A stretch of 64,000 nucleotides of DNA, taken from NCBI RefSeq assembly GCF_020745735.1, contig NC_083435.1:24117231-24181230 (forward strand), written 5' to 3'. Below are positions 3,130 through 46,900 of the stretch, in pieces. The notes beneath the pieces are model-generated. The model was not told the origin of the DNA. It was given only the letters and a program-made list of their open reading frames with translations, and did no database searches. The position numbers and the translations under genes are program-made. How positions within the stretch are numbered: position 1 is the stretch's first letter; every line of letters begins with the position of its first letter. Origin of the DNA: Hemiscyllium ocellatum. Its lineage: Eukaryota.

Positions 3130-3340
3130 ATCTCATCTCGTCAGTGTGGAATGGATAGGTGGGAAGGAAAATGGACAGGTGGGACAGGTCAGGTGGACGG
3201 TCGGGTCTGAGATGAGGTGGGGGTTGGAAGATGAGGAAACGAATGAAGTCAACATTGATGCTGAGTGGTTGGAGGGTCCGAAGGCGGAGGATGAGGCATT
3301 GCTCCACCCAGGCGTGAGGTGGGCTGGATTACAATTACAA
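3130..3340 (-). mobile_element. Penelope-like endonuclease 3' end fragment
   Basis: Minus translation EQCLILRLRTLQPLSINVDF resembles LEEERLIFHLGTLQPHGIFVDF at ~27310-27370. Confidence 0.7.
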
Positions 3341-3974: not shown

Positions 3975-4310
3975 TCAAGTGGGTGGGGGTTGGGGAGCAT
4001 TGATGGGGATAGGTCAGTGTGGAGTGTGGAGTGGATAGGTGGGAAGGAAAATGGACAGGTGGGACAAGTCAAGTGGAGGGTCGGGTCTGAGATGAGGTGG
4101 GATGTGGAAGATGAGGAAACGAATTAAGTCACCATTGATGCTGCGTGGTTGGAGGGTCCGAAGGCGGAGAATGAGGCATTGCTCCCCCAAGGGGTGAGGT
4201 GGGCTGCATTGTGCACTTTGTAGCTCAGGGTGTTGATGCCCTTGCTTGGTAGGTTGGCGAAGAAGCAAATGGTGGTAAGACATGGAGCAGATGGTGACTG
4301 AGAGCAGTTA
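3975..4310 (-). mobile_element. Penelope-like endonuclease 3' end fragment (second copy)
   Basis: Near-copy of 3130-3340, translating EQCLILRLRTLQPRSINGDL. Confidence 0.7.
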
Positions 4311-4568: not shown

Positions 4569-4695
4569 CAGGGGAGAGCGCGAACGCAGTCCCCCACTAC
4601 CACAAATTTTGCAGTCGAGTATCCCGCATTTGGGGACATCGCAGGCGTCAGTACACCCGAAGTGCAATGGGATAGCCTCGTCCTGGAAGCGGCAC
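4569..4695 (-). ncRNA. RNU1: U1 snRNA variant, 3' portion (~nt 38-164), disrupted gene
   Basis: Minus strand: GAGGCTATCCCATTGCACTTCGGGTGT...CTCGACTGCAAAATTTGTGGTAGTGGGGGACTGCGTTCGCGCTCTCCCCTG. Contains the U1A loop ATTGCAC, the Sm site and stem-loop IV of vertebrate U1. Confidence 0.95.
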
Positions 4696-5208
4696 TTTTT
4701 AAAAATTTCAAAATATACTTTATTCATAAATAAATCTTTGGTACCTGTACAATTTGTCATGTCATTGTGGGGCAGTGGGTACCCTCTGGTTCTCATTGGG
4801 TGGAGGGTGGACTTCGGAAGGTCCGTTATTTCCTGGTTGGGAGGAAATGCCCTCCTTTTTATCTACGGCGCTCTGTCTCTTCTGGTGTTGATGACCTTCT
4901 TTGCACCCGTCTTCCCCACCTGAAGAGCTGGCCATCTCTCCATCATGCAGCTGTCTTTTCCCCCTTTGCTGGGAGGCTTTGGGGGCCTGGCAGGATTTTC
5001 TCTTCCTGTTTTTAATAAGTATCTGCTCCTCTGCCTTCTCCATGACCTCCTCCTCCATTGCTTCCATCTGCCCAGCAAGAATCAGCTGCTGCCTCCTCCA
5101 CTCCAGCCTGTTCTTCTTTCTAGGTGCCAACAGTCTCCGTTTCCCTGCTGTCTGGGTGGACCTTGCTGGTCTTTGGGGGTCCATGGCTCACATTGCCACC
5201 TCCAGCCA
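4696..5208 (-). mobile_element. 5'-truncated Tx1-derived insert (ORF1 C-terminal fragment plus 3' tail) inside U1
   Basis: The ORF1 fragment is near-identical to ~6090-6530. The tail ends ATGAATAAAGTATATTTTGAAAT plus an A-run. Flanked by an imperfect 18-bp repeat of U1 sequence. About 430 bp is deleted relative to the 5572-7252 copy. Confidence 0.9.
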
Positions 5209-5263
5209 TCATCCTGGGAGCGCCACCACATATATCATGTCATCTCTCCTACCAGGTAAGTAT
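5209..5263 (-). ncRNA. RNU1: U1 snRNA variant, 5' portion (~nt 1-55)
   Basis: Minus strand: ATACTTACCTGGTAGGAGAGATGACATGAT...GGTGGCGCTCCCAGGATGA. The U1 5' splice-site-pairing end ATACTTACCTG is intact, while loop I is diverged. Confidence 0.9.
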
Positions 5264-5325
5264 GCTCAGCACTCACACTCGCTCACACCCCACAACAGCC
5301 GCTCCGTCTCACTCTCACACTCACT

Positions 5326-5470
5326 CACTTTTGCAACATCGAACATTCACTTACTCAACCTTCCCTGCCTGTCGATCAGCTTCATTCTTCAAATGGATCA
5401 CCGAATCTCTCCAGGACTCCCGTTTTACTCAAATCCCACCCACGGCTGCCCCTGCACTGCTTATCTGCAT
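5326..5470 (-). promoter_or_regulatory. Putative snRNA promoter: PSE-like element (~5326-5344) and octamer-like DSE ATGCAGAT (5463-5470)
   Basis: ATGCAGAT lies at about -200 and a ...GCAAAAGTG element at about -63 to -81 from U1 +1, matching the usual Pol II snRNA promoter layout. Confidence 0.5.
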
Positions 5471-5489
5471 GGAGCCCTTCAAAGGACGC

Positions 5490-5571
5490 GCAGTCGAGTA
5501 TCCTGCATGTGGGGACATCGCAGGCGTCAGCACACCCAAAGTGAATGGGATAGCCTCATCCTGGGAGCGGC
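5490..5571 (-). pseudogene. RNU1: Second U1 snRNA 3' half, truncated before the Sm site
   Basis: Minus strand: GCCGCTCCCAGGATGAGGCTATCCCATTCACTTTGGGTGTGCTGACGCCTGCGATGTCCCCACATGCAGGATACTCGACTGC. Confidence 0.9.
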
Positions 5572-7252
5572 TTTTTTTCATTTCAAAATATACTTTATTC
5601 ATAGAAATAAGTATAAATTTTAAGTATAAGTATAAATTCTTTGGTACCTGTACAATTTGTCATGTCGTTCATAGATATATACATTGCATGTCTTAACGTT
5701 ACAAAGAACAGATTGAATTAATCGAATTTACAATTATCCTATTTACAGTTCCCTTTATTAACCATCCAGTCTCTTATTATTTCGCTGTGGCTTCAGCGGA
5801 ACCCACCTAGTGAGTGGATGCCCTGTTATACGATAGCAAAGGAACCTTCTTTAACCACCAGTTTATGGGGTTACCATTGTCCATTTGACTGTCCTGTCTC
5901 TGGGGTAGCTGTCTGCATCCCCATGGTGAGCTCGAACTGCTGGACCTTTGCTGGGCTGAGGTAGCTATCCAGCTCCTCACTGGGGTCATTTACCCGCTCT
6001 GGTATCATTGAGCCAAGGCAAGGGTCCGCACCGTCCAGTTCTGTGTCTGACAATGGGACTGTCAGAGGATCACAGCTTTCAGTTACCTGTAGTTGTGGGG
6101 CAGTGGGTACCCTCTGGTTCTCATTGGGTGGAGGGTGGATTTCGGAAGGTCCGTTATTTCCTGGTTGGGAGGAAATGCCCTCCTTTTTATCTACGGCGCT
6201 CTGTCTCTTCTTCTGGTGTTGATGACCTTCTTTGCACCCGTCTTCCCCACCTGAAGAGCTGGCCATCTCTCCATCATGCAGCTGTCTTTTCCCCCTTTGC
6301 TGGGAGGCTTTGGGGGCCTGGCAGGATTTTCTCTTCCTGTTTTTAATAAGTATCTGCTCCTCTGCCTTCTCGATTACCTCCTCCTCCATTGCTTCCATCT
6401 GCCCAGCAAGAATCAGCTGCTGCCTCCTCCACTTCAGCCCGTTCTTCTTTCTGGGTGCCACCAGTCTCTGTTTCCCTGCTGTCTGGGTGGACCATGCTGG
6501 TCTTTGGGGGTCCATGGCTCACATTGCCATCTGTGCGTAAGTGGGGCTCCCCCGTCTTGGGCAGGTCTTGTACATGTGGCCCTCTCCACACAGGTTGCAG
6601 CTCTTTGCTTCCTAACAGTCCTTAGTCAGGTGACCCTCCTGTTTGCAATTCCTGCAGATGGTCACCTTACAATCCGCCCCCACTTGTCCCGCCTTCCCGC
6701 AGGTTCGGCACACTTTCGGCTGCCCTGCATATGTCAGGTAGCCTCTGCTCCCTCCAATTGCGAAGCTCGAGGGTGGGTGGAGAATGATTCCATTATCATC
6801 GACCCTCAGAGTTACCCTGACCTGCCGCTTACTGGTCCAGATCCCAAAGGGGTCGATCACATCGGTGGCTTCTCCCTCAACTTGGACGTACCTTCCCAGG
6901 AAGGTCAGGACATCAGCCGCTGGAACATAGGGGTTGTACATATGGATTGTAACAACCCGACTCCTCTGTGCAGGAAGCACACACAATGGGGCCACCGACA
7001 AGATGGAGAATAGCGGCTCCCCTTCCTTCTCCTTGGAGACCTTCAGGAGCTGCTCGCACAGCTTCACACTTCAGATGGTCACGTCGAAATACTCTGCCTC
7101 AGGGAAATCCAGCAGGCAGTACACATCCGCTGCGGCGAACCCACAGCATCCCAACAGCACTTTCTTAATAAACAGGATGCGATCGACCAGTGTATGACCC
7201 TCTACTTTCTTCACAGTCACCCTGACTGTGTTTCGAACCCCCTGTCCAGCCT
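5572..7252 (-). mobile_element. Tx1-derived element with ORF1 only (RRM-like region plus CCHC knuckles), own ~300-bp 3' UTR, joined to U1
   Basis: ORF1 runs from GVRNTVRV (~7240) through CRTC/CRNC/CNLC knuckles to a stop at 5871, with a nonsense codon at ~6612 and a frameshift. No ORF2 follows. The tail resembles the autonomous Tx1 tail, and the poly(A) abuts U1. Confidence 0.88.
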
Positions 7253-9335
7253 CTCAAAAATTGGAGACCAATCTCACTGTTGAATGCGGATTACAAAATC
7301 CTGTCAAAGGTAATCGCCAACCGGGTCAGGTCTGCTCTGGGGTCGGTGATTCACCCTGACCAAACCTGTGCTGTACCGGGCAGGAAGATCGCTGAGAGTC
7401 TCGCACTCCTCAGGGATATGATCGCCTACGTGAAGGACAGGGGGTTGGACACCTGTCTGATCAGCCTGGACCAGGAGAAAGCCTTTGACAGGATATCACA
7501 CAGGTATATGAGAGATGTTCTCTCCAAAATGGGCTTTGGGGAGGGAATCTGCAATTGGATCAGACTGCTCTACACCAACATCGTCAGTGCAGTCTCAATC
7601 AATGGGTGGGAATCAGATAGCTTCCCAGTCAGATCTGGAGTCAGGCAGGGCTGCCCTCTCTCTCTCCAGCCTTGTTTGTGTGCTGCATAAAGCCATTTGC
7701 CGAGTCCATCAGGAAGGATGTGAGCCTGAGAGGGGTGACTATTCCTGGCAGCGGGGGCCTGCAGGTTAAGGCCTCCCTGTACATGGATGACATCGCCGTT
7801 TTCTGCTCGGATCCGCTGTCCGTGCGCAGACTCATGTGCATTTGTGACCAGTTCGAACGGGCCTCAGGGGCCAAGGTAAACCGAGGCAAGAGCGAGGCCA
7901 TGCTCTTCGGGAACTGGGCCGACCAATCCTCGATCCCCTCCACCGTCAGGACCGACCACCTGAAGGTGCTGGGTATTTGGTTCGGGGGGGCTGGGGCGTG
8001 TGCCAAGTCTTGGGAGGAGCGTATCAGTAAAGTGAGGCAGAAACTGGGCAGATGGAGGCTACGGTTGCACTCCATCACGGGAAAAAAACTGGTCATCAGG
8101 TGTGAGGCACTGTCATTGCTATTATATGTGGCACAGGTCTGGCCTATTCCCAGAACCTGTGCCACTGCAGTCACCCGGGCCATCTTCCAGTTTATATGGA
8201 GTTCAAAGATGGACCGGGTCCGAAGGGACTCGCTGTACAAAGATCTGGCCAATGGGGAAAAAATACACCCAATGTCACCCTCACCCTGATGGCCACCTTT
8301 GTGTGTGGCTGCATCAAGCTGTGCGTGGATCCCCGGTACGCAAACACCAAGTGTCACTACGTACTGAGGTTCTACCTGTCCCCGGTGTTGGGAAGGATGG
8401 GCCTGGCCTCGCTGCCGCGGAACGCTCCGAGTAGTTGGACCGTTCCGTACCACCTGTCCTTCGTGGGGAAGTTTATGAAGAAAAACACCTTCGACCACAA
8501 GTCCATCAGGAAGTGGTCAGCACGTAGTATCCTCGAGACCCTTCGGGAAAAGGAGAGGGTGGATCCTGTTGAGTGGTTCCCTGAGCAGACTGTCAAAGCC
8601 ATTTGGCAGAATGCCTCATCGCCAGAACTTTCCAACAAGCACCAAGACATGGCTTGGCTGGTGGTGAGAAGGGCTCTACCTGTGAGATCGTTTATGCACG
8701 CCCGGACTCTCAGCCGCACCGCACGCTGCCCTCGAAGTGGCTGCGGGGGGGACGAGACTGTCACACACCTCCTTCTGGAATGTGCCTATGCAGAGGAAGT
8801 CTGGAGAGGAATGCAGTGGTGTTTGTCGAGGTTCGTCCCAAGCAGCGCCGTGACGCGGGACTCCATGCTCTACGGCCTGTTCCCCGGGACGCACATCGAG
8901 ACGAACATCAACTGCGCCTGGAGGATCATCAACTCGGTGAAGGACGCTCTCTGGGTGGTCCGAAACCTGTTGATCTTCCAGCTGAAGGAGTTGACCCTGA
9001 CTGAGTGTTGCAGACTGGCACATTCCAAGGTCCAGGACTACGTGTTGAGGGACGCGCTGAAGCTTGGGGCAGCTGCAGCCAAGGCGCAGTGGGGAAAGAC
9101 CACCGTTTAACATCTGCCTGTCGAAAGAAGATCAGGGGGCCCATGCAGTCATTTGGGCTCTGCTGATGCCTCAGCTCAATATATGGGCATATGAGTGAGA
9201 AATGCACAGACCTGTATATAATAATGATAAATTCTGATCTCTGTATGTAAGTGTTTACATATGTACGGCATGACCAACTGTACAGACCATCAAATTATTT
9301 TATGAATAAAGTATATTTTTGAAATAATAAAAAAA
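7253..9335 (+). mobile_element. 5'-truncated Tx1 non-LTR retrotransposon (RT with YMDD, C-terminal zinc finger, 3' UTR, poly A)
   Basis: KNWRPISLLNADYKILSK, SLDQEKAFD, GVRQGCPLS, LYMDD and CGGDETVTHLLLEC motifs, with frameshifts. AATAAA and an A tail end at 9335. Confidence 0.95.
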
Positions 9336-10725
9336 GCGGACGTGTATTGCCTGCAGGATTTCCCTGCGGCAGGGTTTTTTGATGTGACCTTCAGGAGTGT
9401 GAAGCATTGTGAGCAGCTCCTGAAAGTCTTCGAGGAGAAGGAAGGGGAACCTCTGGTCTCCATTTTGTCGGCGGTCCCGTTGTGTGTGCTTCCTGCGCAG
9501 AGGAGTCGGGTTGTAACAATCCAGATGTACAACCCCCACGTCCCAGCAGCAGATGTCCTGACCTTCTTGAGAAGATACGTCCAGGTCGAAGGAGAAAGCA
9601 CCAATGTGGTCGATCCTTTCGGGATCTGGTCCAGCAAACGACAGGTCAGGGTAACCCTGAGGGTCGATGCCAGTGGGAACATCCTCCACCCACCTTCCAG
9701 CTTTGCCATCAGAGGAAGCAGAGGTTACCTGACGTACGCAGGGCAGCCGAAGGTGTGCCGAACCTGCGGGAGGTCAGGCCACATGGCGGCGGATTGTAAG
9801 GTGACCGTATGCCGAAACTGCAAGCAGGAAGGCCACCCGACCAAGGATTGTAAGGAGGCCAAGAACTGTAACCTGTGCGGAGAGGCGGGCCACATGTACA
9901 AGGCCTGTCCAAGACGAGGAGCCGCCACCTACGTACAGATGGCCGGAGGTGGCAACACGAGCCGGGGACCGACTAAGACCAGCAAGGCACCACAAAACAG
10001 CACGGGAATGGTGTCTGGAGGCACCCAGAAGGAAGGGCAGGCTGTAGTGGAGCAGACGGCAGACAGCGGGGAGATGCAGCAGCCGATCCAAGCTCCTTCA
10101 GGACAAATGGAGGAAATGGAAGAGGAGGAATCAAAGGAGGCAGAGGATTGGATTACTGTCAAAAACAGGAAGAGGAAACCTCCCAAGGGCCCCAAAGCCA
10201 CCCAGAGAAGGGGGAAGCGACACCTACACAATAAGGATACAGGCAGCTCTTCCGATGGTGAGGACGGGCGCAAGAAGGGTCCTCCCAGAGGAAGAGACAG
10301 AGTGCAGTGGGGAGAAAGGAGGGCAGCACCACCCAAGAAGGGAAAGACGATCCCTCTGAGGGGACGGGTAAAGGCCTCCCCCGACCCGGTGAGAACCAAG
10401 AGGTGTCCACCGGCCCACAGCTCCAGGTAACTCGGAGCAGCGGTCCTGTGACAGCCCCGCTGTCAGATGGAGAACTGGACGGTGCGGACCCTGGGCTCGA
10501 CACAAAGACACCAGAGCAGGGAAGTGGCTCCAGCGTGGAGCCGGACAGCTCCCTCAGCCCTGGGATGGTCCAGCAGTTTGCCGTCACCACGGGGATGCAC
10601 ACAACTACCCCAGAGGGGCAAGATCAGCAGCAAATGAACACTGTTAACCTTGCAAACTGTTAAAATGGGGTTTAAAATTGCCAGCATCAATGTGCGTAGC
10701 ATCAAATCGGCGACGCGATGTGTTT
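9336..10725 (+). mobile_element. Tx1 ORF1 (three CCHC knuckles) plus first codons of ORF2, truncated at both ends
   Basis: ORF 9342-10430 has CRTCGRSGH, CRNCKQEGH and CNLCGEAGH. ORF2 starts MGFKIASINVRSI at 10665 and breaks at ~10725. Confidence 0.93.
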
Positions 10726-21366: not shown

Positions 21367-21627
21367 AAACTAACTCACGAACTTTGAAATATACAATTGT
21401 CTCAGGAGAACAAGATTTCCCTGAAGTCACTGTTGTTGCGATGGTCAACGGAATACAAACAGGTTACTTTGACAGTGATACCCATCGCTGTGTCCCCAGG
21501 CAGCAGTTCCTGACTGAATCACTCGGTGTGAAATTCTGGGACGATGCTACAGATCAGGCAACCACACACACCGGGCTGGCAAAGGAGAATCTGAAATCGA
21601 TCATGAAAAGGACAAACCAGACTTCAG
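21367..21627 (+). CDS. MHC class I-like gene A exon 2 (alpha1)
   Basis: AG/GT bounded, 261 nt, phase 1. DFPEVTVV..VNG...YFDS...PRQQF...FWD...KRTNQTSG includes the conserved N86 glycosylation site. Confidence 0.95.
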
Positions 21628-21659
21628 GTAAAATCTCACCGTCAATTGTCCACATTATC

Positions 21660-22670
21660 CCCCAGGTCACTCCACTCGTTCCATCCCCCAGCACTGACCC
21701 CTGGGTCACTCCACTCGTTCCATCCCCCAGCACTGACCCCTGGGTCACTCTACTCAGTCCATCTCCCAGCACTGACCCCTGGGTCACTCCACTCGGTCCA
21801 TCTCCCAGCACTGACCCCTGGGTCACTCCACTCGTTCCATCCCCCAGCACTGACCCCTGGGTCACTCTACTCAGTCCATCTCCCAGCACTGACCCCTGGG
21901 TCACTCCTCTCAGTCCATCCCCCAGCACTGACCCCTGGGTCACTCCACGCAGTCTATCTCCCAGCACTGACCCCTGGGTCACTCCACGCAGTCTATCTCC
22001 CAGCACTGACCTCCGGGTCACTCCACTCAGTCCATCCCCCAGCACTGACCCCTGAGTCACTCCACTCAGTCCATCCCCCAGCACTGACCCCTGGGTCACT
22101 CCACTCAGTCCATCTCCCAGCACTGACCCCTGAGTCACTCCACTCAGTCCATCTCCCAGCACTGACCCCTGAGTCACTCCACTCAGTCCATCCCCCAGCA
22201 CTGACCCCTGGGTCACTCCTCTCAGTCCATCCCCCAGCACTGACCCCTGGGTCACTCCTCTCAGTCCATCCCCCAGCACTGACCCCTGGGTCACTCCACT
22301 CAGTCTATCTCCCAGCACTGACTGTGGGTCACTCCACTCAGTCCATCCCCCAGCACTGACCCCTGGCTCACTCCTCTCAGTCCATCCCCCAGCACTGACC
22401 CCTGGGTCACTCTACTCAGTCCATCTCCCAGCACTGACTCGTGGGTCACTCCACTCAGTCCATTCCCCCAGCACTGACCCCTGGGTCACCCCACTCAGTC
22501 CATCCCCCAGCACTGACCCCTGGGTCACTCCACTCAGTCCATCTCCCAGCACTGACCCCTGGGTCACTCTACTCAGTCCATCCCCCAGCACTGACCCCCA
22601 GGTCACTCCACCCAGTCTATCTCCCAGCACTGACCCCTGGGTCACTCCACTCAGTCCATCCCCCAGCCCT
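21660..22670. repeat. 39-bp minisatellite, ~26 copies, in alpha1-alpha2 intron
   Basis: Unit CAGCACTGACCCCTGGGTCACTCCACTCAGTCCATC(C/T)CC. Confidence 0.97.
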
Positions 22671-22870
22671 GACCTTGGAATGAAAAGTGAAATGAGGACT
22701 GTCAACTAATTCTGCAAGTTTACCTTGAGATTGGAACCCTTTCCCCTCTGATCAGACTGTGACCCTCATCCCCGATTTCCATCTGATATTTGGTCCCCTT
22801 TCCCTCTGATCAGACAGTGTGTGATTATCTATCGTTTACTGATGATTGATCCCTGTCTGGTCACTGACAG

Positions 22871-23146
22871 GAATTCACACTCTCCAATGGATACATTCTG
22901 TTGAGGTCAGTGAAGATGGCTCTGTGAAGAGATCAATGAGATTTGGATTTGATGGAAAGGACCACATTAGTTTAGAGCCAGACAGAATGAGATGGGTTGC
23001 CGCAAATCACTTTGCAGTGATCAATAAAGAGAAATGGAATTCGGATCAATCCTGGAACTACTATTGGGAATCATATCTGCAAAAAACATCTGTTGAACAT
23101 TTAAACAGATATCTGGAAGTTGGAAAGGAATATTTCACAAGGAAAG
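22871..23146 (+). CDS. MHC class I-like gene A exon 3 (alpha2, no cysteines)
   Basis: AG/GT bounded, 276 nt. IHTLQ, FGFDGKD, KEKW and LNRYLEVGK match class I alpha2. Confidence 0.95.
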
Positions 23147-23262
23147 GTATGTATTTCAGTTTTGTTCCACGTTCTGACCTAACCTCACTGATCTATGAAA
23201 CCGTTCTCCCATTCCATTCAGTGTCTGTCTGTTGGTTGTGTTTTTACCCTTTCCCATCACAG

Positions 23263-23541
23263 TTCAGCCTGAAGTGTTCATCTCCAGGAGGGAGCCCAAT
23301 CGCCAGGACAAGCCGCTCACTCTCTCCTGCCTGGTCACTGGGTTTGATCCTGTAGACATCGAGGTGACCTGGCTAAGGAATGGAGAGGTCATGTCTGAGA
23401 CCCAATCCTCAGGGGTTCGACCGAACCACGATGGGACCTATCAGATCCAGAAAGAGATTGAGATCAATGCTGGGGATGAGGATCAATACTCCTGTCAAAT
23501 TGAACACAGCACCCTGGCAGAAGCCAAGCTTTATCAGTGGG
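23263..23541 (+). CDS. MHC class I-like gene A exon 4 (alpha3, C1-set Ig)
   Basis: LSCLVTGFDPVDIEVTW...PNHDGTYQ...YSCQIEHSTL, 279 nt, AG/GT bounded. Confidence 0.97.
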
Positions 23542-26500
23542 GTAAGGGACTGGAGTGTGAGTGTGAATGTGTGTGTGTGTGTGTGTGTGTCTGTCTGTCT
23601 GTCTGTCTGTCTGTTCCACCATTAATTGAAGTTGCTCTGATCTGTCCCTCACTCCCTTTACCCATTCCTGGTCCATGTCTTTTGCTGCTCTTCCCCAACA
23701 AAACCCTCCTGATCTCAGGCTGGAAATATTCAATTGATCCTCAGCGCTCACAGCATTTCGGTTCGAAAACTCCAGATTTCCATTAACATCAATAGGAGGC
23801 CTCTGATTGGTCCGTTAACCTGATCCAATCAGGGAGTCCTGACTGACATTAAAAAAAGGGTGTGTCAGAGGTCTTGAGGGTCTGGCAGCTGAATCTGAAT
23901 GAGGTACCACTAAAGTCTAGGACTGTTCTTGTGTAAATGAAGGGTGACTTTGTGAGTGAATGCTAGCTTCTGTCGGGCTATTCCAGTGGCAATGGGAGTA
24001 AAGCATAATCATGAAGAAACTTGCTCACAACAGGCGCCTTTCAGTCAGGGAAGCATTTGGTACATCCATGCCTTTGTTTGGGAAACTTGACTTGTTCGAT
24101 CCTGCCATCGAGGACTGGGCCCAGTGTGTGAAAATAATGTGGCATATTTTCTGGGCAAATAGCATTGTGGTAGGTGAAAAGCAACAAGTAATTCTCCTGA
24201 CAGCTTGTGGAGCTGCAGCTTTTTCTGTTATTAGGATTCTAGCTTTCCCTGTGGCACCAGGTACTAAAACCTTTCAAGCATTGATAGGAATAATTAAGAA
24301 ATATTATGTACAAAAGCCTCCTCTAATTCTGAGATGCTATCTTTTTTATTTGGCAATTCAAGAACCAGGGAAATCCACACTGGGATATCTGACTAGGTTA
24401 GAAGACTGGCAAAAGTATGGGAAATTGGTTTAATCCTTAATGAGATGCTAAGAGAATGGTAGGTGAAATTACTGATGTAACTATGATGTAATACTGATAT
24501 AACTATGATGTAATTAATGATGTAACTATGCAAAAACACCTACTGGCTGAATCCCAACTGCACTTCAGGCAGCTACTACAACTGGCTTTATCATTGGAAA
24601 ATGCAGCAAGTGGAGCTCATGAATTACAGGGTATTCCAATGGAAGTGGACACCCTCAACAGTTCGACTGAACTTGGAGGACACCACCTGGGTGCATGCAA
24701 TTGCATAGCCTCACTCAGGACATATCGATCAGATGGACTTGAGGTTGGCTCACCATAAAACACTAAACCAAGCCTCAACAAACAGTTAAAATGTTGATCA
24801 GGTTCCTGGCCATTAAGGCATTGCAGTTTCTGTCGATGGGTGGAATTGAGACAGCAAAAATGTCCTACTTGACTTAAATTGAGCGAGATAAATTATAGCC
24901 CCATATTCAGGTGGGTATCCTGAAAAATCCATCCATATCTGGTTTGGAACAGTTAAATTGCATCGCGGCATCAAAATCAGAACCAACCAATTAAAACATC
25001 TGGTTAACTGGTCATTCGGTTCTGATGGAGGTCGATCCGAGTGCAGCTGTATCAGTGATCACAGAACCAACCTTTAACAAGATTCACTCTGAACCCCAAC
25101 CCTTAACTTGGCAGAAGTTCTTGGCCAGACTGAGAACCTAAACTGAGGAAGCTTCAGAGAATAGGGGTACAACTTCAGTTTCGCTCTTTCACGGAAGGCA
25201 GCTGGTTCAGTTACCAGTGATTGTGCTAAAAGCTTCAAATCCGAGCTTAATGGGGAAAAATCAGTTGTGAGAGATTCACCCCGAATGGCTCAATATGTTT
25301 CAATTAGAAAATGGCTGCTTGAATGAAATTCAATTTACTTACCTGTAGATCATCCAGGAAGATCTAGGGGTAATCAGAGGAGCCAAACCACCTTGCATGT
25401 TGACCAGGAATCAATCCCCTGTAAGGCCTGCCCAGTGCCATTGGTCTTACGGGCAAAAGTCAAGGCAGAAATTAGAAGGCTGGAAAGTGAAGGAATTATC
25501 AAACCAGTCCAGTTTGTGGGATAGGCAGCAGTGATTGGAATGGTACTGAAGCCCAGTGGGTCGGTTTGCCTTTGTGGGGATTTTAAACAAAGTGTAAACT
25601 GCTTTTGACAGCAGAATAGATCGCCAGCCCCTCAGGATTTGTGCCCAACGTTGGTGCAGGATGGGAGTTCTCCTTCACACAGCTGGACATGGGCCACACT
25701 TACTTGCAATTGTGATTAGACCAGGTTCCCAGACGTATGCTACAATTAATATCCATCAGGGATTGTACCAAGATACAAGACTGCCATTTGAGGTATTGTC
25801 AGCCTGTTCGATCTTTCAGTGGACAATAGAGAACATCTTGCATGGTCTACCCCAGGTCGCCATTTACTTAGATGGTAAATTAGCCAATAACAGGGAAAAC
25901 TAATAAGGAGCAGTCAGAGAACTGGATATAGTCCGAAGGTGGTTTTCCAAGGCAGGCATTTGCCTAAGGAGGGAAAAAATGTATATCCCAAATGATCTAC
26001 TTGGGATACAGATTCAACAACTCTGGGTTACACCTGTTGGAAGGTAAAGTGAGGGAGATCAAAGGTGCTCTGGTTCCTACGTCTGTCCAGGAACTTACAT
26101 CATATCTTGGGCTGGTAAATTATTTTGGAAAGTTTGTACATAACCTGGCCTCCGTCCTGGCACCATTACATCAACTCATGACAGAAAGGATCAGCCTGGG
26201 AAATGGTTGCAAACATAAGATTGAGCTGTCAATGAAGGAACAATACAACTGTCATCCTCCAAGGATTGGCACTCTGTGATCCCAAGAAAGATCTAGTGTT
26301 GACATGCGATGTTTTCCCGCACAGCATTGGAGTCGTATTAGCTCATGGTGGCTCAGTGGAGAGGAACATCCAAGAGCATATACATCTAGGACTTTGGCCA
26401 ATGCAGCACGTAAATACACCCAGATACAGAAGGAAGGATTGATGGTCATATCTGGGGTCAGGACATTCCACCAATACCTTTGTGAATTAAAATTTGTGAT

Positions 26501-40934: not shown

Positions 40935-43900
40935 GGATCCCTGATGGAGGTGACTCAGCAAGTCTGAGCCTATAGTGCTTCTCCCAGGACCGAGGCAAAG
41001 TGAGCCACCCTCCTCCACCACACTCACCAAATCAATTCAAAATAGTTTTTATTTAATGTTTTGCTGGAATGCTGGGGGTTTGAAGTATTGGATTACTGTC
41101 AAAAGCAGGAAGAGGAAACCTCCCAAGGGCCCCAAAGCCACCCAGCAAAGGGGGAAGCGACACCTGCAAGTCGAGGACACAGGCAGCTCTTCCGATGGTG
41201 AGGACGGGCGCAAGAAGGGTCCTCCTCAGAGGAAGAGACAGAGCGCCGTGGGGAGAAAGGAGGGCAGCACCACCCAGGAAGGGAAAGACGATCCCTCTGT
41301 CGGGAGGGGTAAAGGCCTCCCCCTACCCGGTGAGAACCAAGAGGTACCCACCGGCCCACAGCTCCAGGTAACTGGGAGCAGCGGTCCTGTGACAGCCCCG
41401 CTGTCAGATGGAGAACTGGACGGTGCGGACCCTGGGCCCGACACAAAGACACCAGAGCGGGGAAGTGGCTCCAGCGTGGAGCCGGACAGCTACCTCAGCC
41501 CCCCGGAAAGGTCCAGCAGTTTGCCGTCACCACGGGGATGCACACAGCTACCCCAGAGGGGCAAGACCAGCAGCAAATGGACACTGTTAACCTTGTAAAC
41601 TGTTAAAATGGGGTTTAAAATTGCCAGCATCAATGTTGGCTGCGCGATGTGTTTCAACGATGGCCTTCCTGGCCAGCGTTAAAGCCGACCTCCTGTTTCT
41701 GCAGGAGTGTGGGATACCGCACCTCAGCAGCTACAGGAGATGGTCGAGCTTGTGGGCCCATGGGCAGTCAGTTTGGTCGGGGGGGACAACGATAGCCGCG
41801 CCTCCGGCCTGGGTATCCTGTTGCGAGGAAGCAACTTCACCATCTCCGAGGTTCAGGAGGTGGTGGGCGGGCGCCTCCTCATCACCGACGTTATGTACAA
41901 GAATGCTCCCCTGAGATTGATCAATGTGTACGCCCCAGTGGGTAAGAGTGAACGGTTGGCCATCCTGCAGCAGCTTCCACTGTTGCTGGCTACGTCCAGG
42001 CTGGTCATTCTGGCCGGAGACTTCAACTGTATCATTGATGCAGATGGACGATCCGGCGGGGGGGACAGTAAACTGGACGCCACGTCCAGAGCCCTGATGG
42101 TCATGGTAAAAGATGCCAAGCTGCACGACATCTTCAGCACCCCTGCAGATGGAGCACAGCGTAGATACACCTGGTCAGGGGCAGACGGGTCTATCCGTTC
42201 AAGGATAGATTACCTGTTTGTGTCCCGAACGCTCTCGGTCAGATCCACCGACGTCAAGCCGGTGTTCTTCTCTGACCACTGCCTCCTGCTGGCCGACTGT
42301 CACCTACAGGATGAGCAGCGGGCGGGTAAGGGAACGTGGAAGCTGAAAACAAAGCTGTTGAACCCGGGAAACATTGAGGAGCTCAAGAGGGACTATGCAG
42401 GTTGGAGAACCGTGAAGCCCCTCTTTGAGTCCCCAGCGGACTGGTGGGAAACAGTAAAAGGGAACATCAAGAGGTTCTTCATCCTCCGAGGTGTTCAGGA
42501 GGTGAGAGAGAGGCGGGGAAAACTGTCCCAGCTCCAGGAAAGTATGCAGAACCTGCTCCTGCTGCAGACGATGGGGGTCGATGTCACGGAGGACCTCAAG
42601 GAGGTGAAGAGCCAGCAAGCCTCGCTCTTTGCCTCGGAGGCCTCCAAGATAATCTTCCGGTCCAGGGTCCGCTCGGTGGAGCAGGACGAGACGTGCTCAC
42701 ATTTCTTCTTCCAGAAGGTGCACAAAGAGAGCTCTGTGCTCAGCAGCCTGAAGGAAGAAGACGGCTCGACAACGTCATCTCAGGCTGATGTCATGAGGAT
42801 CAGTAAATCCTTCTATGCCAGTCTGTATGACGCGAAGCCAACTGACAGCGAGCCCTCCCAGTTATTCCTGTCCTCCATCACGGAGGTCTTAGACGACAGA
42901 ACACGTGAGAGGCTGGACCAGCCGCTATCTCTGGACGAGCTGACCAAGGCCCTCGAGTCCTTCGAAAAGAATAAAACTCCCGCTCTGTGGGACTTGATTG
43001 GCCAGGACCTGCTGGAGGTGTATGTCAGTATGCTTCAGGCGGGTACCATGAGCGAATCCATGAGGAAAGGCATCATCACCCTCATCTACAAGCGGAAGGG
43101 GGGAGGGAGGAACTCAAAAATTGGAGACCGATCACACTGTTGAATGTGGATTACAAAATCCTGTCAAAGGTAATCGCCAACCGGGTCAGGTCTGCTCTGG
43201 GGTCGGTGATTCACCCTGACCAAACCTGTGCTGTGCCGGGCAGGAAGATCGCTGAGAGTCTCGCACACCTCAGGGATACGATCGCCTACGTGCAGGACAG
43301 AGGGTTGGACATCTGCCTGATCAGCCTGGACCAGGAGAAAGTCTTTGACAGGATATCACACAGGTATATGAGAGATGTTCTCTCCAAAATGGGCTTTGGG
43401 GAGGGAATCTGCAATTGGATCAGACTGCTCTACACCAACATTGTTAATGCAGTCTCAATCAATGGGTGGGAATCAGATAGCTTCCCAGTCAGATCTGGAG
43501 TCAGGCAGGGCTGCCCTCTCTCTCCTGCCTTGTTTGTGTGCTGCATAGAGCCATTTGCCGAGTCCATCAGGAAGGATGCGAGCCTGAGAGGGGTGACTAT
43601 TCCTGGCAGCAGGCGCCTGCAGGTTAAGGCCTCCCTGTACATGGATGACGTCGCTGTTTTCTGCTCGGATCCGCTGTCCGTGCGCAGACTCATGTGCATA
43701 TGTGACCAGTTCGAATGGGCCTCTGGGGCCAAGGTAAACCGAGGCAAGAGCGAGGCCATGCTCTTCGGGAACTGGGCTGACGAATCCTTGATCCCCTTCA
43801 CCGTCAGGACCGACCATCTGAAGGTGCTGGGTATTTGGTTTGGGTGGGGGGGGTGGGGCTGGGGCGTGCGCCAAGTCTTGGGAGGAGTGTATCAGCAACA

Positions 43901-46900
43901 TGAGGCAGAAACTGGGCAGATGGAAGCTACGGTCGCTCTCCATCACGGGAAAAAGCCTGGTCATCAGGTGTGAGGCACTGTCATTGCTGTTATACGTGGC
44001 ACAGGTCTGGCCTATTCCCAGAACCTGTGCCGCTGCAGTCACCCAGGCCATCTTCCAGTCTATATGGAGTTCAAAGATGGACCGGGTCCGAAGGGACTCG
44101 CTGTACAAAGATCTGGGCAACGGGGGAAAAAAATACATCCCAATGCTACCCTCACCCTGATGGCCACCTTTGTGTGTGGTTGCATCAAGCTGTGCATGGA
44201 TCTCTGGTACACAAACACCAAGTGTCACTACGTACTGAGGTTCTACCTGTCCCCGGTGTTGCGAAGGATGGGCCTGGCCTCGCTGCCGCGAAACGCTCTG
44301 AGTAGTTGGACCGTTCCGTATCACCTGTCCTTTCTGGAGAAGTTTATTAAGAAAAACACCTTTTGACCACAAGTCCATCAGGAAGTGGTCAGCACGTAGC
44401 GTCCTTGAGACATTTCGGGAAAAGGAGAGGGTGGATCCTATTGAGCGGTTCTCTGAGCAGACTGTCAAAGCCATTTGGCAGAATGCCTCATCGCCAGAAC
44501 TTTCCAACAAGCACCAAGACATGGCTTGGCTAGTGGTGAGAAGGTCTCTGCCTGTGAGATCATTTATGCACGCCCGGACTCTCAGCCGCACCGCACGCTG
44601 CCCTCGAAGTGGCTGCGGGGGGGACGAGACTGTCACACACCTCCTTCTGGAATGTGCCTATGCAGAGGAAGTCTGGAGAGGAATGTAGTGGTATTTGTCG
44701 AGGTTCGTCCCGAGCAGCGCCGTGACGCGGGACTCCGTGCTCTACGGCCTGTTCCCCGGGACGCACACCGAGACGAACATCAACTGCGCCTGGAGGATCG
44801 TCAACTCGGTGAAGGATGCTCTCTGGGTGGTCCGAAACCTGTTGGTCTTTCAGCTGAAGGAGTTGACCCCGACTGAGTGTTGCAGACTGGCACATTCCAA
44901 GGTCCAGGACTACGTGTTGAGGGACGCGCTGAAGCTTGGGGCAGCTGCTGCCAAGGTGCGGTGGGGAAAGACCACTATGTAACATCTGCCTGCCTCAGAA
45001 GAATAGGGGGCCCTGCAGTCATTTGGGCTCTGCTGATGCCTCACCTAAATATATGGGCACATGATGGATAAATGTACAGACCTGTATATAACAATGATAA
45101 ATTCTGATCTCTGTTTGTAAATGTTTACGTATGTATGGCATGACCAACTGTACAGACCATCAAATTATTTTATGAATAAAGTATATTTTTGAAATAAAAA
45201 CAAGTAATTAGTGGTTTAGTACTAAATTTATACACTTCAGTCTCCTGTAAAAATGACTCGGGGGAAAGGAGCCCCTCCCCAGCTGCAGTAGAGGCGTCTG
45301 CAGCTGCCCGGGGTACTTACCTACAGTGGCGAGCCTCGCGAAAATAATCTCCAAACTCGATGCAAAGATCGATGCTTTCATAGAAGAGTCCCGAAGTCGG
45401 TGGAATTCATTCTCGGCTGCGCTATCAAAGCACGGCCGAGACAACGAAGAAATCGAGCGCCGAGTCGGAGGGGCGGAGCTAAAGGCCGCGACCTCCGAGG
45501 CCATTGCAGAGTCGGCCGTGGATCGTGTCCGGACTCTCAAACAGTGAGTCCGGACCTTAGAGAATCACATTGACGACCTCGAGAATCGAGGTCATAGAAA
45601 AAAATATTCGTTTGCTGGGCCTTCCCAAACGGGAAGAAGAAGGTCAGCTTATAAGGTTGCTTGAACAGTGGCTTCCGCAGTTATTAAATCTGGAGGCTGG
45701 ATCAGGCCAGGTAAGGGTAGAATGGGCCTACCGGGTTACAATACATGGGCCCGGCTCGAACCAGCACCCCAGCCCGGTCCTGTTCCAGCTGCAGAGCTAT
45801 AAGGTGAGGCAGATTCTCTTGGAAGCCTCCAGAAATCTTGGGAAAGATCCACAAGCCATGACTCATAAAGGATCCAAGATTATGTTATTTCAGGACTTTA
45901 CCCCAGCTTTGGTCCGAAAGAGGAAGGCGTTTGATGAAGCAAAGAAGTGTTTAAGGGATTTAAACATTCAATACTCCTTGCGCTACCCAGCTCTACTACG
46001 CTGTAGCCGTGAAGGGTCCGTGTATAACTTCGGATCACCGGAGAAGGCCAAGGAACTTCTGGACTCTCTTAGACAAATTATAAGAGTTAATCAATGTTGT
46101 TTTGCCCTACCCCACCCCGGTTTTAGCCAGAGAGTCTAGTTAATGTAGATGGGGGTGGGGGGGATGGTGGCTACCTTATCTTATTTTATCTTTGTCCTTG
46201 GGAGCGGGGTGGTTTTCCCCTGTTATTTTGTATTAATATATTTAATTATTATTTGCTGAGACCGTAATTTTGTAATACCATATATGAACATATATGACTA
46301 ACATTACCAAATATATTCAGGTGTTGGTGTAGGTGGGGGTGGGGGTGGTGGTGAATAGGGTACTCACTGCTAGTTCTACTTCAGTCGTATACTTGAATTT
46401 TCTTTATCCTATCGTGGGATGCCTGTGTCAAGGGTGGAGCACTGGTTGGGAGAGGTTATGGTGGGTGTTTTGGAAAAGAAACAATGTCCCCTGGGAATAA
46501 GGGGGAAGATCTCCATTTAAATACATTTTATACTTTTTTTTACTATTTAGAAAATAGTTTTTTTAAATTGTATCGATTTGAATGTACTAAAGAGCTTTTA
46601 TATTTGTGAATTTTATATGTTCTATGCTCGTGATGTTTTGGATAAATAAGGGTTTTGTTGTGATCTGATGTTAACACATTCCGAGCAGGTATGTCACTGC
46701 TCAATTTATGTGTTATCCGTTAGGTTTTTTTTCTCTGAATAATGTAAGAATTTTAATTATACACTCTGGTTAGTTGTAAGTTAGATGAGTAGTTAGTTGA
46801 GTTTTTTGTCTTTTTTTTTCTCTTGGTATTTCTTTTTTCTTGTCTGATAGATTTTGGTTGTCATTTATTTAAGATTTAACTGTATATCAATGTTTATACT

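Follow-up and report, generated by a model that had tools for sequence, protein, structure and literature searches.

The Tx1-clade LINE Keno inserts specifically into U2 snRNA genes, as PMC4494074 and PMC4640811 relate after Kojima & Fujiwara 2004. As these citing papers present it, Keno resembles the elements reported here in being Tx1-type, in occupying a fixed position inside a spliceosomal snRNA gene that offers a multicopy target, in its gene-sense orientation and in its A-tailed 3' end, which adjoins snRNA sequence. The target differs, being U2 for Keno and U1 nt 37-40 here, and whereas Keno-like targeters are described as encoding their own target-specific endonuclease, the copies at the present locus have neither endonuclease nor reverse transcriptase. 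A 2015 paper gives only Keno and Utopia (U2), Dada-U1 and Dada-U6 as snRNA-gene targeters (PMC4640811), to which PMC4494074 added a U5-targeting Tx1 element. In the literature that we searched, the targets of Tx1 elements are U2, U5, 5S rRNA, tRNA spacers, satellites, microsatellites and DNA transposons; U1 is absent from them, and no U1-targeting retrotransposon has been reported there.

Use of U1 snRNA genes as a site-specific niche is known from Dada-U1A and Dada-U1B, zebrafish DNA transposons specific for U1 genes (PMC3706591). Unlike the present copies, these are DDE transposons; they duplicate 6 bp (GCGAAT) within the CCCCTGCGAAT stretch of U1, about nt 90, so that both site and mechanism differ. 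Tx1 biology is linked to U1 sequence in the crocodilian SINEU/Tx1-Mar system as well, in which SINEs with U1/U2-derived heads are mobilised by Tx1 (PMC4494074) and, being non-autonomous, depend on a target-specific Tx1 partner. In SINEU, U1 is the head of the element and a Mariner transposon is the target, whereas the present element is a LINE derivative that carries ORF1 and has U1 as its candidate target. For the ORF1-only architecture the counterpart is HAL1 (half-L1), a group of mammalian L1 derivatives that are non-autonomous and carry ORF1 alone (PMC5753468, after Smit 1999 and Bao & Jurka 2010). By that summary HAL1 elements, like those described below, keep ORF1 and the LINE 3' end without ORF2, reach high copy number and presumably move in trans; they derive from mammalian L1, in contrast to the present elements, which are Tx1-type with an RRM/CCHC-type ORF1, occur in sharks and are associated here with a specific site.

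Results

Two U1 gene units in the window

The window, by which we mean the whole 64-kb stretch of DNA analysed, holds just two U1 pieces according to Rfam. The stronger match (4569-4706) scored 79.2 bits against a gathering score of 69.5, and the weaker one (5495-5562) scored 21.6 bits. Direct reading resolved the stronger match into a U1 gene split by a 513-bp insert on the minus strand (5208-4696). The 5' part of this gene, U1 nt 1-55, lies at 5209-5263 and the 3' part, U1 nt 38-164, at 4569-4695, both on the minus strand; Rfam and direct reading thus agree with the original prediction that the first of two inserts is bracketed by U1 halves. When 5263-5209 and 4677-4569 were joined, taking out the insert and one copy of a terminal duplication, exactly 164 nt of U1 were obtained, which keep the 5' splice-site-pairing end and the Sm site; the loop of stem-loop I in this unit (unit 2) is non-canonical. 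The weaker piece belongs to a neighbouring unit 1 (5491-5571, minus strand; U1 nt 40 to about 120, 91.5% identical to the other U1 flank). It is 3'-truncated at 5491 and fused to the upstream spacer of unit 2 (5264-5490, minus strand), which was delimited by contig depth and by loose ends at 5490/5491. The spacer is multi-copy in two shark organisms, A and D, at U1-like contig depth, consistent with a U1 gene repeat unit. The best explanation for the host site of both inserts is adjacent units in a small cluster of variant U1 snRNA genes. At 5543, in the U1 flank, the apparent loss of 1 nt in many copies was discarded as a soft-clipping effect, the clipped contigs having the canonical base.

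Insert junctions and the target-site duplication

The original prediction had two minus-strand, Tx1-related inserts joined through poly(A) to U1 at about nt 38-40, and the junctions fall at nt 38 and nt 40. At the 3' junction of the short copy (4696-5208), ...GAAAT is followed by T4A5 and then by U1 nt 38; at that of the long copy (7252-5572), ...GAAAT is followed by GA7, and this terminal A-run is joined to U1 nt 40. Both subfamily copies in the window (2/2) therefore lie in U1 in sense orientation, and the only two subfamily tails in the 64 kb each adjoin one of the only two U1 pieces. The predicted 18-nt duplication at the ends of the short insert was also recovered: U1 nt 38-55 is present at 5226-5209 (upstream copy) and again at 4695-4678 (downstream copy), with 15/18 positions matching. 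Because the 5' junction has 2-4 nt of microhomology, the length of the duplication is refined to 16-18 bp. The nick site is GC-rich, with a primer end of ...CGCCAC, in contrast to the T-rich nick site of L1-type elements, which points to sequence recognition. These data support a genuine target-primed insertion for the short copy, which entered a U1 gene in sense orientation with a duplication made of U1 sequence.

It could be argued that U1 formed part of the retrocopy itself, either because reverse transcriptase switched templates onto U1 snRNA, giving a chimera of the L1 type, or through 3' transduction by a master copy residing in U1, since snRNA-LINE chimeras and U1/U2-headed, Tx1-mobilised elements are known (SINEU, PMC4494074). 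However, the short insert is flanked by U1 at either end, and the two flanks overlap in their U1 coordinates (nt 1-55 and nt 38-164), which is the signature of a duplication and not of a chimera. There is neither a duplication outside U1 nor an A-run after the U1 3' end, and the sequence preceding U1 nt 1 is present in many copies, at a depth like that of U1, as expected for a gene unit. The exact-junction words were absent from the low-coverage contigs of organism A (three sampled words, a weak sample), suggesting that the junction is not a high-copy composite. We consider a retrocopied U1 highly improbable.

Structure and decay of the two copies

The short copy was delimited by its 97.25% identity to 6529-6093, by alignment of its tail and by its 5' end, which matches the canonical ORF1 sequence of P0001. 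It is 5'-truncated within ORF1 and then runs through an internal deletion of about 420 bp into the conserved tail and T4A5; the deletion corresponds to long-copy positions 6092-5673, so that the end of ORF1 and most of the UTR are gone. In the long copy, ORF1 (5871-7252, minus strand) was defined by Pfam, frame analysis and alignment to P0054, P0001 and P0002, and is 5'-truncated or interrupted at 7252. It contains part of a first RNA-binding domain, a second RNA-binding domain, three CCHC knuckles and a K/E-rich C-terminal region, and Pfam reported PF23058 (E=1e-27) and PF00098 at 6612-7067. The domains are thus ZCCHC3-type RNA-binding domains and CCHC knuckles, in the order (RRM-like, then CCHC) of a Tx1-type ORF1. 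The 3'UTR (5572-5870, minus strand) consists of a GA7 run, a conserved tail with AATAAA, about 235 nt resembling the autonomous 3'UTR and a remnant of about 65 nt of inter-ORF sequence.

Frame analysis and alignments showed that ORF1 is broken in both window copies, that of the long copy by two in-frame stops and by deletions of 10 nt and about 20 nt; both copies are dead. A premature stop seemingly common to the two was rejected, as this TGA lies out of the canonical frame after alignment to P0001 and P0054. The copies share 97.25% identity over 437 bp and are only 76-79% identical to the ORF1 of the ORF2-bearing family represented by copies A and C, which bears out their assignment to an ORF1 subfamily of their own.

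ORF2-bearing relatives

Three relatives of the autonomous type lie on the plus strand. Copy A (40975-45200), which served as the reference for clade and 3'UTR homology, spans the end of ORF1, endonuclease, reverse transcriptase, 3'UTR and tail, and its ORF2 has Exo_endo_phos and RVT_1 domains (Pfam). A structural model of its N-terminal 478 aa, with a mean pLDDT of only 64, found as best match the Tx1 149 kDa protein of Xenopus (P14381; E=6e-19, 22% identity), with L1 ORF2 behind it (E=1e-13 to 1e-15, 17-18% identity). Copy B (7253-9334) is 5'-truncated and extends from the reverse transcriptase (RVT_1, zf-RVT) to the tail, with 93.9% identity to copy A 43113-45200; it adjoins the 5' end of the long copy and is not in U1. 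Copy C (9335-10693) comprises ORF1 (PF23057, PF23058 and CCHC in Pfam) and the first codons of ORF2, and thereby marks the ORF2 start relative to the ORF1 stop. That the ORF2-bearing copies here do not sit in U1 held true: within the window the flanks of their three tails are unrelated to U1, the 3' flank of copy A included. No further ORF2 candidate was found among the other long ORFs of the 64-kb window, and neither an ORF2 partner bearing the UTR of the long copy nor a U1-flanked ORF2 copy was seen in it.

An ORF1-only derivative amplified in sharks

The long copy was predicted to run from the ORF1 stop at 5871 into a UTR of about 300 bp without ORF2, and we measured 299 bp of non-coding sequence with no ORF2 before the tail. 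Translated comparison (tblastx) of this UTR with the ORF2 end and 3'UTR of copy A gave only short, weak matches with E of at least 0.002, and UTR positions 96-288 aligned to the copy A 3'UTR with 62.6% identity (E=4.5e-6). Homology to copy C continues past the ORF1 stop as far as about the ORF2 start, and it resumes only in the 3'UTR. Over the last ~40 nt, identity to the tails of ORF2-bearing copies is 90%, as expected from the predicted resemblance to the autonomous Tx1 tail. Judged from these alignments, the element consists of ORF1, inter-ORF spacer and a 3'UTR homologous to the autonomous one, with ORF2 excised almost exactly. Since the UTR is homologous to the 3'UTR of autonomous copies, half-Tx1 is a fair description.

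At a threshold of at least 85% identity, 2,519, 1,965 and 1,538 contigs from the shark organisms A, C and D, respectively, were mapped onto the element. UTR depth was comparable with ORF1 depth, and contigs of each organism bridge 5871 from the ORF1 stop into the UTR; the architecture is therefore family-wide. Organism B yielded a UTR contig (5573-5830) and ORF1 contigs, none of them across the ORF1 stop. The original prediction had named a UTR produced by recent deletion in a single copy as an outcome that would speak against it; the contigs of organisms A, C and D instead reveal the architecture of an amplified family. As in HAL1, ORF1 and the 3' end of the parental LINE are kept, ORF2 is deleted and the derivative has been amplified as a family. 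In Chiloscyllium punctatum, P0054 is annotated as a 450-aa ORF1 with both RNA-binding domains, a faint CCHC match and 63% identity, and a 214-aa query from the ORF1 C-terminus returned Chiloscyllium proteins only. An exact scan of JGI metagenome contigs with a 22-nt tail sequence hit three marine bacterial contigs, all of them chance matches.

One insertion or two

The two junctions lie only 0.9 kb apart in one cluster. A single chance insertion into U1, followed by tandem duplication or unequal crossing-over of the unit and by deletions that remodelled both copies, would yield such a pair with no targeting at all. It would account for the position of the junctions in neighbouring U1 units, for the deletion of about 20 nt that both inserts share relative to the Chiloscyllium ORF1s, and for a G-to-C change at U1 nt 41 that is common to both 3' flanks and absent from the upstream duplication copy; this last feature hints at shared ancestry or gene conversion. 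Against it, the 5' ends of the elements differ (about 6540 in the short copy, beyond 7252 in the long one), and the short copy meets U1 nt 55 at its own element position with perfect 164-nt U1 geometry, which would require the later deletion to begin exactly at the element boundary. Each copy has a private deletion (420 bp in the short, 10 nt in the long), and the A-runs and junction offsets differ as well. We read the mismatch in 5' ends, junction offsets, A-runs and internal deletions, taken together, as evidence of two separate insertions. Moreover, the U1 flanks are more diverged than the inserts (7/82 versus 12/437 positions; Fisher p=0.019), and an initial chance hit in U1 is very improbable in itself. 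We thus regard duplication of a single insertion as unlikely and favour two separate events.

Possible specificity for U1

The association with U1 is based on two examined junctions (n=2). Among the mapped contigs the family greatly outnumbers U1-like sequence, a comparison that is unreliable as human-resembling contigs had been dropped and U1 is conserved. Under this filtering, the depth of U1, tenfold lower and seen as a dip in read coverage, is uninterpretable and does not count against targeting. In two organisms there are contigs in which a Tx1-type tail runs into ORF1 position 7124-7128 and not into U1, and the tail of copy B meets copy C at the corresponding position. Comparison by eye revealed no likeness of the U1 site to the sequence around ORF1 position ~7131.

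These joints, together with the very large size of the family and the non-U1 flanks of autonomous copies with the same tail, would fit a weak or occasional U1 preference in which most copies lie elsewhere, for example in the A-rich tails of other LINEs or repeats. Weakly specific snRNA-targeting families do exist, such as the reptile Utopia (PMC4640811), and with most copies at other sites "U1-targeting family" would overstate the case. In contrast, both subfamily tails of the window (2/2) are in U1, the GC-rich nick site was reused within 2 nt, and the tail-ORF1 joints may derive from the autonomous family, which has a tail with 90% identity. A preference as loose as this is possible, although we doubt it. 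Insertion at the same spot in two neighbouring U1 genes points to a candidate U1-directed machinery, of a kind absent from the literature searched.

Discussion

Our preferred interpretation, which we hold to be probable, is that the window contains two separate, dead insertions of an abundant, ORF2-less, Tx1-type LINE derivative in adjacent U1 units, mobilised in trans with a preference for U1 nt 37-40. For the family as a whole, U1 may be the exclusive target or a preferred one. Integration proceeded by target-primed reverse transcription, with a bottom-strand nick between U1 nt 37 and 38 (39/40 for the long copy). The other strand was cut after about nt 55, which gave the 16-18-bp duplication, and the 5'-truncated cDNA was attached through 2-4 nt of microhomology. 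The element codes for neither endonuclease nor reverse transcriptase and must therefore be mobilised in trans, presumably by an autonomous Tx1 relative that supplies the ORF2 protein. Such a partner protein would recognise the conserved 3' tail, and its apurinic-like endonuclease would favour U1 nt 37-40 in the way that the Keno enzyme favours its site in U2. New copies, inserted in sense orientation 37 nt into U1, might be transcribed from the U1 promoter. A bolder proposal, which we put forward only tentatively, is that sharks of this group harbour the first non-LTR retrotransposon lineage specific for U1 genes (nick at nt 37/38), with an ORF1-only parasite in thousands of copies that uses large variant-U1 arrays and U1-promoter transcription; the endonuclease of its partner would recognise the stem-loop I/II junction in the U1 DNA.

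If the family is old and dead and its preference for U1 no more than weak, the locus amounts to routine repeat annotation. The ORF1-only derivative would be the first HAL1-like element outside L1 in the literature searched, and a HAL1-like Tx1 bears on the question of whether ORF1 protein supplied in cis aids the hijacking of ORF2 protein. A U1-directed Tx1 endonuclease, if true, would be a new specificity in a clade whose specificity has changed repeatedly. Target-specific LINEs in multicopy RNA genes are models of how selfish elements avoid harm to the host and starting points for programmable gene insertion.

A U1 snRNA gene split by a half-Tx1 element

Read along the minus strand, the locus opens with the long copy of half-Tx1, an ORF1-only Tx1-type LINE derivative (7252-5572), followed by a U1 fragment spanning nt 40 to about 120 (U1 unit 1, 5571-5491; Rfam 21.6 bits). 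A 227-bp spacer (5490-5264) lies upstream of U1 unit 2, a gene divided by the short half-Tx1 copy (5208-4696) into nt 1-55 (5263-5209) and nt 38-164 (4695-4569; Rfam 79.2 bits, above the gathering score). Relaxing the Rfam threshold to E<=1 revealed no further U1 pieces in the 64-kb window, and a search of the window tolerating <=3 mismatches yielded no further U1 5' ends. In assembled Logan contigs from organisms A and D, the upstream spacer of unit 2 was multi-copy at U1-like depth, and 1-2 very deep contigs, with breakpoints at 5490/5491, covered its stretch 5400-5494. This stretch therefore belongs to a multi-copy unit, which is probably the U1 gene repeat, and the loose contig ends at 5490/5491 indicate that a deletion fused U1 unit 1 to the spacer of unit 2. 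The locus is thus a degraded two-unit U1 cluster.

The stem-loop I loop of the split gene (5209-5263, minus strand) reads AUAUAUGUG, which is non-canonical when compared with AUCACGAAG, the vertebrate loop bound by U1-70K. Contigs of organism C carried a U1 version nearer canonical at nt 38-47. Elsewhere in the window there were two minisatellite-like tandem arrays (2191-2491 and 2662-2908; self-match ladders whose periods range from a few bp to tens of bp), a stretch at 3143-3330 repeated at 4023-4210 with 92% identity, and an MHC class I-like gene (21384-23786, plus strand), with an Ig C1-set domain at 23232-23786 and a weak MHC_I alpha1/alpha2 match at 21384-22055 (23.8 bits, short of the 28.3-bit Pfam cut-off).

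Insertion signature at U1

The original prediction placed both element/U1 junctions at nearly the same U1 point and proposed that an 18-nt U1 segment is duplicated around the short copy; both claims were confirmed. The short copy joins U1 at nt 38 and the long copy at nt 40, and the U1 halves flanking the short copy overlap over nt 38-55, the two copies of the segment agreeing at 15/18 positions. Excision of the short insert with one duplication copy restored a U1 of exactly 164 nt, in which the Sm site and the 5' splice-site-pairing end are both intact. The overlapping halves and this clean restoration mark the short copy as a target-primed insertion that produced a target-site duplication. 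An snRNA-LINE chimera was also considered for the short copy, but the pattern is not the one expected of such a chimera. Direct sequence reading showed that U1 and both element copies share sense orientation. In contrast to the T-rich site of L1-type endonucleases, the bottom-strand primer end here (...CGCCAC) is GC-rich and unable to anneal to an A-tail, which suggests sequence recognition at the U1 nick site.

One insertion event or two

The long and short inserts differ at 12/437 aligned positions, as against 7/82 for their U1 flanks (Fisher p=0.019). This divergence is a modest argument for two events, because CpG-type changes account for several of the flank differences; the structural differences are the stronger evidence. 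Within the element, the 5' truncation point of the short copy lies ~710 bp downstream of the 5' limit of the long copy, with the duplication geometry still exact. Its opening nucleotides are canonical element sequence, coding MAGGGN of the Chiloscyllium ORF1 protein P0001, and show a microhomology of 2-4 nt to U1 nt 51-55. The 3' junctions differ by position (U1 nt 38 versus nt 40), the A-runs of the two copies are T4A5 and GA7, and each copy has private deletions. One feature does not fit this picture: U1 nt 41 is C in both 3' flanks versus G in the upstream duplication copy, which may point to common descent or gene conversion.

ORF1 without ORF2

ORF1 contains ZCCHC3-type RNA-binding domains and CCHC knuckles, and a single reading frame covers the entire long copy: it opens in a partial first RNA-binding domain and ends with the stop at 5871. 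Alignment to the annotated Chiloscyllium ORF1 proteins P0054 (450 aa, 63% identity), P0001 and P0002 revealed decay in both window copies: a 10-nt deletion near 6530 and two in-frame stops in the long copy, one additional stop in the short copy, and a ~20-nt deletion near 6400 common to the two.

In copy C (9335-10693), an autonomous-type relative retaining ORF1 and just the first ORF2 codons, ORF2 starts ~20 nt past the ORF1 stop. The long copy is homologous to approximately this point and then continues for 299 non-coding nt, in line with the predicted ~300-bp UTR lacking ORF2. Positions 96-288 of this stretch match the 3'UTR of copy A (40975-45200; ORF2 with endonuclease and reverse-transcriptase domains) at 62.6% identity (E=4.5e-6). 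The anticipated resemblance to autonomous Tx1 tails also held, the final 40 nt being 90% identical to the tails of copies A, B (7253-9334) and D (48893-48298), the last two likewise with ORF2. One common tail block, the CATGAC..TGTACAG motif, is invariant; a second, near-invariant block holds the AATAAA signal and terminates in GAAAT. Homology up to the ORF2 start, resuming in the 3'UTR and tail, indicates that ORF2 was excised almost exactly, which is the HAL1 pattern.

Logan contigs aligned to 5400-7300 at >=85% identity numbered 2,519 in organism A, 1,965 in C and 1,538 in D, with 34 in B. UTR depth was comparable to ORF1 depth, and contigs of organisms A, C and D bridged the ORF1 stop into the UTR, all of which shows that the ORF2-less form did not arise as a local accident. 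Three predicted proteins from other sources (P0055, P0056 and P0058) showed a K/E-rich segment resembling the ORF1 C-terminus fused directly to the mid endonuclease domain; they may represent further Tx1 derivatives with internal deletions, or else incorrect gene models.

Autonomous-type relatives and target specificity

Copies A-D share 94-95% mutual identity, whereas the ORF1 of their family is just 76-79% identical to the U1-linked pair, supporting the proposal that the pair forms an ORF1 subfamily apart from the ORF2-bearing copies. When the first 478 residues of copy A were modelled (mean pLDDT 64), the top match was the Xenopus Tx1 149 kDa protein (E=6e-19, 22% identity), with L1 ORF2 proteins ranking behind, which lends moderate support to the Tx1 label. 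Consistent with the expectation that no ORF2-bearing copy here sits in U1, three autonomous-type tails have flanks unrelated to it. About 110 nt past the copy A tail, GTACTTACCTACAG (45300-45330, plus strand) loosely resembles the U1 5' end, ATACTTACCTGG; the likeness is probably chance, since Rfam gave no U1 match there.

Contigs resembling human DNA were removed, and low U1 contig depth is thus no evidence on targeting. Certain contigs, independently in organisms A and D, carried a Tx1-type tail and A-run joined to ORF1 position 7124-7128. The A-tail of copy B similarly adjoins copy C at 9334/9335, where copy C is 5'-truncated at the equivalent of long-copy 7131. U1 is therefore not the sole 3' neighbour of such tails. 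The tails joined to ORF1 7124-7128 may belong to the autonomous family, and the recurrent junction could mark a hotspot of truncation, a second site of insertion or an internal start site.

Known Tx1-clade targets include U2 (Keno), U5, 5S rRNA, tRNA spacers, satellites, microsatellites and DNA transposons (PMC4494074). According to a paper from 2015, the only elements reported to target snRNA genes were Keno and Utopia (U2), Dada-U1 and Dada-U6 (PMC4640811); the Dada-U1 site in U1 is a GCGAAT motif, unlike that of half-Tx1 (PMC3706591). HAL1 has been described for mammalian L1 only (PMC5753468), and our full-text literature search found no U1-targeting retrotransposon. U1 specificity across the family and a partner endonuclease are putative; for these two insertions and the ORF1-only architecture, the interpretation is a well-supported hypothesis.
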